NCBI GenBank assembly: GCA_002269645.1
Contig: NIVC01001956.1
Span: 22,663 to 86,662, forward strand
DNA length: 64,000 bases
Direction of reading: 5' to 3'
Origin: Macrostomum lignano
Taxonomy: Eukaryota
Part shown: in pieces, positions 7,701 through 10,700 of the stretch
Numbering within the stretch: the first letter of the stretch is position 1
Layout of the letters: the number at the start of each line of letters is the position of its first letter
The notes under the pieces: model-generated
Databases searched by the model: none
The model's input: the letters and a program-made list of their open reading frames with translations, nothing else
What the model was told of the DNA's origin: nothing
Translations under genes and position numbers: made by a program

Positions 7701-10700
7701 TGTTGGTTAATACTATATGTTGCAGATAAAAGTTGCAAGTACAAGCATAGCCGATAAAATATAATCTGGGATTCGTTTCTGGAAACCACCGTATTCTCTA
7801 AACTACAAGCTATATATGCTAAGGGGGGACTCCATAAGACAAAAATTTCACAACGCCAAAAATTCTGCATAGTCCTTGATATACGCTCATACTAAGTTTT
7901 CTACGAGTTTCCAGCTTTTGCACCCAGATTTGGAAGAGTTATTAGCTTAACAGGCTAGTGAGTATTAGTTTTAGTAGTATATTAAGTAAAATGTAGTTTC
8001 GCATCGTTTAGTGTGACTAATAATTTGCGCAAAGTTGATTATTCCATAAAAACATTCCAAGCTAAGCAAGCAAGCTGAAAGTGCAAGAACTGTAGAGATC
8101 GTTTTTAAAAAATGGTATCTCACCGCTCCGCTAGCACCGCTGCCGCCACTACCGACGAGCAAGTCAGTTGCTGAGCCTTTGCGCGGGCTGGCTCGCAGAT
8201 TAAAGCCAGGATTGCTGCCCGTCTTGCTCATCCGACGCTGCTGGTCCAGCCCTGAGGAGCGGGACAACATGGGGTTGGGAATCGGAATTAGTTATTTGCA
8301 TGAAACCGTGAATATCGCAATGCTAATTTGATGGTGTCAAGTGATTTTGGCTCGATATTATACTCTGCAAAGTACTGAAAAGCAATGGTTCTTTTTGTCC
8401 GCGCATCCGAATCTTAACGTGCTTCTGCCTTTGAGTTCCTCGCGTAAAAATTGTTTGTGCCAGCGCTCATACTTCGGGTGTGCCAAAATTATTTAGACCA
8501 TTCTACGCCTGGACGCGACAGAAGCTCGAAGTCACTGCTTAAAAGAGCTGTCCTTTGTGTATGGATGAGAAGATCCGCGCCACACTACCGTTTTTAATTA
8601 CTTCAAGGTAGCCAAGTGCCACCAAAGCAGCCAGCGACTGCTCCAATGGTGCTGGCGGACCATTAACCAATTCGAACTTCCGAACTGATCGAAGATGAGA
8701 AGATCGGCAGGTACAACATGGATAACTTCCGACTAGCTGGAGATCGACGAGTCGAAGGTGCATTAAGGAGAAGATCCGGGGCTGCGTTGCATCACTTCAG
8801 TGATCCCCTCACGGAGGCAGAGTGGCATATGCTGGAAACATTCCGTAGCGCATTTCAGAGCGAAGGAATGGACAACATCATTAACAAGTTGATCACACAG
8901 TATGAGAGCTGGATCTTTAGTAAAGGCTAGCCTTGCAAAATGAGCAAAATCTAAGGGAGAGCACAGGCCTCCGGTGGCGAGATGCCTGACAGACAAGAAC
9001 ACTGCTGGTTGTAGCCTTCCCACCCACTAAGAGGTCTTCCTTTGCAACAACCGAATCAGGACAGCCAGTAGATAGGACAGGCTGAACTTATCGCCAACTT
9101 AGTTTAGCGAACTAGAAATCCCTGGCGATCTCTCAGAAGTCAGCCGATCTATCTTGACCAAGTCACCTGGCAGTGGGACAGGGCCAGGCCTCACGCAGCC
9201 GCAGCAACTCAGCATTACAAGGAGAAGCGATCCAAAGCGATCCGACTGCCGTGACCGGTTTCTGTTTCTGTTTTCCTTGCTGCAGCGAGACTTCGAGCAG
9301 CGATATTTTCTGGATGCGCGGCCTTGCAATGAGAAGGGATTAGAGATTGGAGATTTAAGATTGGAGATTGGACCTGAAAACAACTGGCCTCGTTCTTGAG
9401 TAGCCATCAGTTCACAGTGGCGACGATCAGGCTTTATCGGCCGACTTCCTGAACTCTCTGCCAACTCGGACATCAAGGCTCGAACAATGCTTCATTTACA
9501 AGGATGTTCGAGACGAGGCATAGGTGACTACCCTGATTACAGCAATCGAATATTTTATTATCATTATTATCATAGACGCATTTTGAGAATTTGGTACTGC
9601 TATGCAGCCCGAGTATCCTTGGTGTTTAGCTTGAGACTTCTGCATCTGCAACTTCGTTATCTTCGCTTTTGATTATTCTCAAACAGGCTTTTCCTTCAGT
9701 TCTCAACACTTTCGCATGATTGCGACAGCAACTCTTTTATTCAATGGCCTTTCAAACTAATTCCATTAACAAGCCCTAAAATTTCATGCGACTAAATTAC
9801 GTTAAACTGATCGGCGCTACTTTCGTTACTTAGCTGTTTGATACGCTCGTAGTTGTGCTTTTCGTCAGTTGCCTTAGGCCAAGCGACTGTACCTCTTATG
9901 TCGTAGAATATGCTGCTTGCTCAGACTGCTTACGAGCTGCTGCAGCGGGACAGGTGCTTGAGACGTTCCTTGTCCTATTAGAGGCATCCAATTGGCTGTT
10001 TCATTGCCACACAAGAAACAATTGGGTTTCCCTGAGAAAATACCAAGGGAAATCCCAAGTTAAACATGTCCGAGTCGATCCAATCTCTGTCCAATGAGCA
10101 TCTAGTTGTGTTGGAGGCGTCTGGTTTTATTGGCTAAGTCACTGCACGATTTTTTCAGCTAATCGAACAAATAGCCTCTTCCCGGCAAACGCTAACCTCT
10201 TTGCTTTCCCGTGTTCTATTTTCCACCACTGTTGCCAGCTGAAAGCTCGACAGCGGGCAAGTAAAACTCGAAGAAAGCTATCGATTGAAATTATTTTTTT
10301 CGTCGGGCAATCATGCGTTTGCTAGGTACTCTGGGAACTGTTTTAGTCCTGATCGGTCTAGCAGCTGCTGGCCGTGAGCAGGAGGACACTCAAGGTGCGC
10401 TAGAGGAGAAGAGGTTCTCTGCTCCGGGAACCTACGACTGGAAAAAGAGGTTCTCGGCTCCTGGGACGTACGACTGGAGGAAGAGGTTCTCGGCTCCTGG
10501 GACGTACGACTGGAGGAAGAGGTTCTCGGCTCCTGGGACGTACGACTGGAGGAAGAGGTTCTCTGCTCCTGGGACGTACGACTGGAGGAAGAGGTTCTCT
10601 GCTCCTGGGACGTACGACTGGAGGAAGAGGTTCTCGGCTCCTGGGACCTACGACTGGAAGAAGAAATCAATGGAATGAAACTGACACAAATGCCGATTGG

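Follow-up and report, generated by a model that had tools for sequence, protein, structure and literature searches.

A candidate neuropeptide precursor carrying seven copies of the non-amidated nonapeptide FSAPGTYDW in the flatworm Macrostomum lignano

Acoelomorphs possess multi-copy precursors of the AWDF/LWDY peptides, such as GMAWDF of Diopisthoporus gymnopharyngeus, and mass spectrometry has verified their processed forms in acoels (PMC6188537). Nemerteans and brachiopods have the AxxxDF peptides (ASWLDF/AKFNDF), which have been reported as a lineage-specific innovation and whose presence in Lineus longissimus was verified by mass spectrometry (PMC8557429). No receptor for these Asp-aromatic peptides of acoels, nemerteans and brachiopods is reported in the two papers cited (PMC6188537; PMC8557429). 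The planarian flatworm Schmidtea mediterranea has the prohormones SPP-15, with eight copies of FDPIQFamide, and SPP-16, with QFDPIMY, and their peptides were detected by mass spectrometry (PMC2953531). The gene described here, from the flatworm Macrostomum lignano, would bring a platyhelminth example to the non-amidated Asp-aromatic peptides that occur scattered among acoels, nemerteans and brachiopods. It lies in a stretch of 64,000 nucleotides (contig NIVC01001956.1, positions 22,663 to 86,662 of the forward strand), referred to below as the window, and encodes seven exact copies of the nonapeptide FSAPGTYDW. It is probably a transcribed, intron-less gene for a small secreted pre-propeptide, and FSAPGTYDW is most likely a neuropeptide.

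The M. lignano precursor resembles those of the AWDF/LWDY peptides in its signal peptide, its evenly spaced copies flanked by KR or KKR and its lack of amidation. Both also share a free aromatic-Asp-aromatic C-terminus, which is W-D-F or W-D-Y in acoelomorphs and Y-D-W or F-D-W in M. lignano, and the third of the paralogous genes described below, whose peptides end in A-F-D-W, mirrors the acoelomorph A-W-D-F. However, the AWDF/LWDY peptides are 6-mers and not 9-mers, have the order of the aromatic residues reversed, lack the F-x-x-P half and come from another phylum. Like the spiralian AxxxDF peptides, those of M. lignano are multi-copy, KR-flanked and non-amidated and end in Asp and an aromatic residue, but AxxxDF peptides are 6-mers that start with Ala, follow the register aromatic-x-D-F and have Phe, not Trp, as the last residue. 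SPP-15 and SPP-16 also come from a flatworm and give rise to multiple copies of short F...P..[F/Y] peptides, those of SPP-16 also being non-amidated; they differ by the absence of the D-W ending and by another spacing of Phe and Pro, and SPP-15 peptides are amidated.

A first-pass annotation of the window, made from the DNA letters only, had named molluscan FCAP as the only loose parallel, which can no longer be maintained, as AWDF/LWDY and AxxxDF are closer. FCAP peptides are multi-copy, non-amidated and Trp-ended, but they are 13-mers ending in ...HGW, without Asp before the Trp. Their likeness to the M. lignano peptide (Trp end, lack of amidation, multiple copies) is drawn from this general description, and no FCAP entry occurred in the spiralian precursor text searched. 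The amidated families, namely RFamide/FLP, MIP/Wamide and APGWamide/RGWamide, were ruled out, as no unit has a Gly before the basic site. A relation to APGWamide, to which the 'APG...W' of the peptide might point, was rejected both for the lack of amidation and because APG is not kept in the paralogues, which have QPG, QAG or APQ at this place. Achatin-type precursors are Gly-rich and defined by a G-[F/Y]-x-D tetrapeptide; this tetrapeptide is absent from the M. lignano reading frame, and the achatin type was rejected as well.

The gene occupies positions 10313-10678 of the forward strand as a complete, single-exon open reading frame (ORF) of 121 codons, translated into 121 amino acids from an ATG start. 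The translation reads, in order, MRLLGTLGTVLVLIGLAAAG-REQEDTQGALEEKR-(FSAPGTYDW + KKR/RKR)x6-FSAPGTYDW-KKK-SME-stop. No other ORF in the 64 kb unites an ATG start, a hydrophobic N-terminus and at least three dibasic sites. Tandem Repeats Finder (TRF) places the array at 10408-10664 (36-nt period, 7.1 copies, 95% matches). A degenerate DNA pattern spanning two neighbouring units matched six times in the window and never in 100 shuffles. The patterns defined for the family were [KR]R-F-x-x-[PA]-x-x-[YF]-D-W-[KR] for the peptide and TWYGAYTGGARRARRMGNTTY-N15-TWYGAYTGG for the DNA.

The N-terminus has Arg as its second residue, followed by 18 uncharged residues (3-20) with a mean Kyte-Doolittle hydropathy of 2.12, and it qualifies as a signal peptide in a rule-based check by its hydrophobic stretch and the small residues at -3 and -1. 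By the -3/-1 rule, candidate cleavage falls after residues 17-20, with A-A-G|R favoured. Translation and this check bear out what the first-pass annotation had seen, seven exact FSAPGTYDW copies behind a signal-like N-terminus and an acidic pro-segment. The junctions in the window precursor are EEKR|F, KKR|F, RKR|F (five times) and W|KKK, such that a di- or tribasic site bounds every copy. The earlier statement that the copies are bounded by KR, KKR or RKR is correct for all these junctions except the last unit, after which KKK comes. Signal-like N-terminus, acidic spacer and di- or tribasic sites around all copies together agree with the prohormone-convertase precursor architecture proposed at first sight.

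Peptidylglycine alpha-amidating monooxygenase requires a Gly-extended substrate. In the window gene the Trp directly precedes K or R in 7/7 units, as it does in all paralogues, and the Gly donor for an amide is absent. FSAPGTYDW therefore cannot be amidated, as the first-pass annotation had concluded. For the free acid, recalculation gave an [M+H]+ of 1043.447, in line with the earlier value of about 1043.45. The mature peptide would be small, linear, aromatic-rich and anionic, with an isoelectric point (pI) of about 4.

A repeat with an open frame is alone insufficient to establish coding, because the window abounds in tandem arrays (22 rows in TRF, several of them with a period that is a multiple of 3) and because further frames of the FSAPGTYDW array are also open, the antisense frame for 119 codons. 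The coding status was therefore settled from a second genomic copy, a frame test and the paralogues. The second copy (L001), on contig NIVC01004175.1 of the public Mlig_3_7 assembly, shares about 96-97% identity with the window along 10 kb; duplicated blocks of at least 95% identity occur frequently in this assembly (PMC5730564). The ORF of the second copy (L001 5001-5402) is intact and holds eight units, and its pro-segment differs from that of the window by one E/D change.

The frame test was made with 15 units, seven from the window and eight from the second copy, among which eight columns are variable. Read in the FSAPGTYDW frame, they give seven synonymous variants and two K/R variants in the spacer, whereas in the other five frames the variation is mostly non-synonymous or a stop is present. 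The variable peptide columns (4/4) are all four-fold degenerate sites, which make up 5/27 sites (P = 2.8e-4). The codon alternations noted at the outset (TCT/TCG, CCG/CCT, GGA/GGG and ACC/ACG) were found exactly as described and are all synonymous, and amino-acid changes are indeed confined to the basic spacers, where only K/R exchanges were seen. Purifying selection on the peptide had been proposed from the array itself. Within one array this argument is weakened, because concerted evolution or a recent repeat expansion could give the same pattern; weak on that basis, the proposal is rescued by the second genomic copy, the frame test and two paralogues.

The first paralogue (L002 5001-5423, on contig NIVC01000415.1) is again a single-exon ORF, with 140 codons and amino acids and eight units. 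A signal-like N-terminus and an acidic segment ending in KR are followed by one FAQAGTYDW and seven FVQPGTYDW; the spacers are KKR, and the C-terminal tail reads NEE. FVQPGTYDW and the window unit share F, P, G, T, Y, D and W, and their codons for Phe (TTC/TTT) and Gly (GGG/GGA) differ synonymously; the Arg of the cleavage site is the same although its codons, AGG and CGC, are two nucleotides apart. At the amino-acid level the units differ by S to V at position 2, A to Q at position 3 and one conservative R to K among the basic spacer residues. No alignment is possible between the signal and pro-regions of the two genes. A short peptide kept together with its cleavage sites, while all else has drifted, is the signature of a bioactive-peptide precursor, and stronger evidence than the pattern within one array.

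The third gene of the family is represented by gene models of another assembly (P0002 and P0004) and carries FSAPQAFDW and FSAPHAFDW behind the signal-like LIQALVFAALVALLVCQTEA and AKKR. P0002 (UniRef A0A1I8HD77) is a fragment labelled 'Coat protein', and P0004 carries the paralogue as the C-terminus of a fused model of 1378 amino acids; both the 'Coat protein' label and the fusion are annotation artefacts. The junctions of the paralogues with their non-repeated pro-regions are also dibasic, HSKR|F and AKKR|F. Unit positions 2, 3, 5 and 6 vary among the paralogues, while the basic sites and the D-W end are invariant, and the array length among the copies ranges from 7 to 9 units. By these comparisons, the family is one of three paralogous genes with the core F-x-x-P-x-x-[Y/F]-D-W-COOH, directly followed by two or three basic residues.

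Public gene models exist for the family, PAA48327.1 (Mlig001773.g8), PAA83548.1 (Mlig017890.g3), PAA73271.1 (Mlig017890.g1) and PAA59548.1 (Mlig030851.g1), labelled only 'hypothetical protein'. The Mlig_3_7 annotation was derived from RNA-seq only, by StringTie/TACO and a de novo transcriptome, with TransDecoder for coding potential (PMC5730564). The existence of models in an RNA-seq-based annotation is therefore indirect evidence of transcripts, and on this indirect evidence the gene is taken to be transcribed. PAA48327.1 (85 amino acids) and PAA83548.1 (92 amino acids) have four units each, against eight in the genomic ORFs of the second copy and of the FVQPGTYDW paralogue, and skip exactly 144 nt in-frame within the array as an 'intron'. 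The repeat unit itself holds AG|GT...AG|G, which gives room for a canonical GT-AG intron, and the 144-nt 'intron' probably reflects a collapsed short-read transcript aligned over a spurious, repeat-derived GT-AG intron. The novelty claimed at first has to be divided accordingly: the databases already contained the gene as a 'hypothetical protein' derived from RNA-seq, whereas its interpretation as a peptide precursor is new. The new element is to see here a family of three genes for non-amidated x-[Y/F]-D-W peptides, apparently restricted to one lineage.

In a search with the family profile against 1.84 billion representative proteins, 25 matches were obtained, among which only P0001-P0004 are real, all from M. 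lignano; the remaining 21 (P0005-P0025) are repeat proteins of no relation and have no units flanked by dibasic sites. Word-based searches of 5.8 billion protein clusters likewise returned M. lignano only, and exact-sequence look-ups of the window ORF, P0004 and P0002 gave no match. The two-unit DNA pattern was found neither in a prokaryotic genome collection nor in viral contigs, a result of little weight, as flatworm DNA is not expected there. The full text of about 8 million papers yielded nothing relevant for the peptide strings, and the gene identifiers likewise led to no relevant paper. A prior account in McVeigh 2009 or Koziol 2016 is possible but unlikely, because amidated motifs and parasitic species were reportedly the focus of these screens. 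The motif of xDW followed by a basic residue is absent from 51 Schmidtea mediterranea prohormones (PMC2953531), and neither it nor the peptide strings matched in a supplement of Taenia crassiceps npp orthologues or in a Schistosoma mansoni neuropeptide paper. The stored part of about 1,300 nemertean, brachiopod and phoronid precursors with reference sets also gave no match. The earlier impression that the peptide matches no known family is upheld by the profile, word, literature and precursor comparisons, none of which placed it. The family is apparently restricted to the M. lignano lineage, in the sense that it was not found elsewhere in collections that thinly cover free-living flatworms.

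For FSAPGTYDW as a neuropeptide, we infer processing, neuronal expression and action at a receptor. The signal peptide would be removed in the endoplasmic reticulum near Gly20. In dense-core vesicles, a prohormone convertase of the PC2 type would then cut C-terminal to each KR, KKR or RKR (and KKK), and a carboxypeptidase E-type enzyme would trim the basic residues. The predicted products are seven linear, free-acid FSAPGTYDW peptides, the acidic spacer peptide REQEDTQGALEE and the tripeptide SME, and the nonapeptide would be the functional one, acting on a receptor. Sulfation of Tyr7, which stands beside Asp and near Pro and Gly, is conceivable but speculative, and would raise the mass by 79.957. 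Calculated [M+H]+ values for the other predicted peptides are 1112.505 for FVQPGTYDW, 1058.458 for FAQAGTYDW, 1068.479 for FSAPQAFDW, 1077.479 for FSAPHAFDW and 1404.624 for the spacer REQEDTQGALEE; the doubly charged FSAPGTYDW ion would lie at m/z 522.227. The P4 residue of the cleavage sites is Trp, which makes them dibasic sites of the convertase type and not furin sites (R-x-x-R) and thus favours the regulated pathway. A pc2 homologue with a strong RNA interference (RNAi) phenotype is known in M. lignano (PMC4490696), the PC2 promoter labels the whole nervous system of this worm (PMC12435804), and pc2+/7b2+ peptidergic neurons are present in its single-cell multiome atlas (bioRxiv 10.1101/2024.09.03.611027).

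Several observations weigh against this interpretation. Two further FVQPGTYDW gene copies with nine units each, L003 818-1289 (contig NIVC01002254.1) and L004 1501-1975 (contig NIVC01001021.1), carry frame-breaking deletions of 1-2 nt in short runs of C and A; apart from these deletions, L003, L004 and L002 are identical. The deletions probably reflect homopolymer errors of long-read sequencing, although L003 and L004 may also be degenerate copies or pseudogenes. The searches made revealed no orthologue outside M. lignano, such that conservation rests on the paralogues of one polyploid genome, and most transcriptomes of free-living flatworms are probably missing from the databases searched.

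The precursor and its processing could be as described and the product nevertheless be made in a non-neural gland and act outside the body or on the mate, as a pheromone, an allohormone of the seminal fluid or a secretion related to defence or attachment. This possibility, which the first-pass annotation had also named, is unlikely, although neurons and gland cells cannot be told apart from sequence alone. The glands of M. lignano express many short, repetitive, taxon-restricted secreted products, the apparent lineage restriction of the family is typical of reproductive and secretory genes, and both gene copy number and array length (7, 8 or 9 units) vary. A nine-residue peptide strictly kept across old paralogues, with KR-type sites at all junctions, is on the other hand the standard signature of a neuropeptide, and the non-furin sites with Trp at P4 point to the regulated pathway. 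The small, linear, aromatic-rich and anionic character of the mature peptide is unlike antimicrobial or adhesive peptides and argues against such a role of the processed form. Similar non-amidated multi-copy peptides in acoels and nemerteans are, moreover, treated as neuropeptides.

The genes might also be divergent orthologues of a known non-amidated family, AWDF/LWDY and/or AxxxDF, and hence no new family, which seems improbable. The evenly spaced multi-copy units, the KR/KKR flanks, the lack of amidation, the free aromatic-D-aromatic end and the pairing of A-F-D-W in the third paralogue with A-W-D-F would fit such a descent. BLASTP of the M. lignano precursor, however, gave E = 1.0 against the acoel AWDF precursor, E = 0.78 against the Lingula AxxxDF precursor and no alignment with planarian SPP-16, and with units of nine against six residues, reversed aromatics and a different register in AxxxDF, a likeness of three residues cannot establish homology. 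The ending [Y/F]-D-W and the lack of detectable precursor similarity place the peptides outside AWDF/LWDY, with a functional analogy being possible, and as 9-mers ending in Y-D-W they fall outside AxxxDF, whose members are hexapeptides of the form A-x-x-x-D-F. The wider idea that the x-[Y/F]-D-W peptides of M. lignano, AWDF/LWDY and AxxxDF all go back to a single ancient family of non-amidated peptides in bilaterians, with a conserved receptor, is quite improbable. If it were true, M. lignano, with transgenesis, RNAi and a cell atlas, would be the animal in which to find the receptor and its function.

It is very unlikely that the protein stays uncut and serves as a small, strongly cationic, repetitive secretion rich in Tyr, Trp, Lys and Arg, for example as an adhesive, eggshell or matrix component. 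Without its signal, the protein has a pI of about 10, with ~24% K+R, 7% Tyr and 7% Trp, and each 12-residue repeat contains Pro and Gly, a composition that loosely recalls adhesive and eggshell repeat proteins. Yet the protein is very small (101 residues), and its basic residues come in runs of two or three that end in R (K at the last site) and stand directly before Phe1 and at the boundary of the pro-region. The acidic pro-segment and the short acidic tail are prohormone features, and the paralogues vary at the unit positions given above, whereas their basic sites and D-W end stay constant. Finally, a non-coding 36-nt tandem repeat, open by accident in several frames of a repeat-rich genome, is hardly credible and effectively already refuted: the window has many tandem arrays, some of them with periods divisible by 3, and the antisense frame is open over 119 codons, but only the FSAPGTYDW frame has an ATG and a signal-like sequence outside the repeat, only in that frame is the observed variation synonymous, a paralogue keeps a like peptide with different codons, and RNA-seq-derived gene models exist.

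M. lignano is a transgenic, RNAi-amenable model flatworm whose peptide signals are poorly catalogued in comparison with those of planarians and parasitic flatworms. The gene and its two paralogues provide three concrete, mass-predictable peptides that are directly testable, and the annotation is worth correcting. Read as a neuropeptide precursor, the gene is one more lineage-specific orphan propeptide, of the sort that specialists expect in each newly examined phylum, and no new kind of system.

The positions of the parts of the peptide gene and of other tandem arrays in the window are collected in Table 1. The surroundings of the peptide gene are repeat-rich and apparently gene-poor, with no other convincing ORF within ~5 kb on either side, and the window has no match in Rfam.

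Table 1. Parts of the FSAPGTYDW gene and further tandem arrays, in window positions
Feature	Position	Strand	Remark
Start codon and predicted signal peptide MRLLGTLGTVLVLIGLAAAG, amino acids 1-20	10313..10372	+	A at -3 of ATG
Acidic pro-segment REQEDTQGALEE, then first KR site, amino acids 21-34	10373..10414	+	pI 4.1
FSAPGTYDW x7, 27 nt per unit	10415..10657	+	spacers KKR (x1), RKR (x5)
FSAPGTYDW unit starts	10415, 10451, 10487, 10523, 10559, 10595, 10631	+	exact copies
C-terminal tail KKK-SME and stop codon	10658..10678	+	identical tail in L001 and P0001
AATAAA, candidate polyadenylation signal	10956..10961	+	motif match only; ~280 nt 3' of stop
Tandem arrays	2-620 (21 nt); 16583-17021 (44 nt); 17356-18222 (17/36/125 nt)		periods in brackets
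Tandem arrays	37837-38326 (16 nt); 56616-57442 (33/233 nt); 59230-59718 (5 nt)		periods in brackets

Farther along the window, an ORF on the reverse strand (55105-55836) encodes a doublecortin (DCX) domain, with human doublecortin as the best PDB match (E = 5e-9, residues 28-105), and is probably one exon of a DCX-family gene. It is overlapped on the opposite strand by an ATG-initiated ORF of 338 codons (54772-55788, forward), which starts with a 30-nt tandem repeat (HA[AV]NTFQVTL, ~6 copies) and is probably spurious, created by the repeat. Two microsatellites of more than 1 kb, at 4791-5901 and 20582-21920, consist of the same tetranucleotide, as (AACT)n and (TAAC)n with ~277 and ~335 copies, and account for two segments of the window with low GC and strongly skewed composition.

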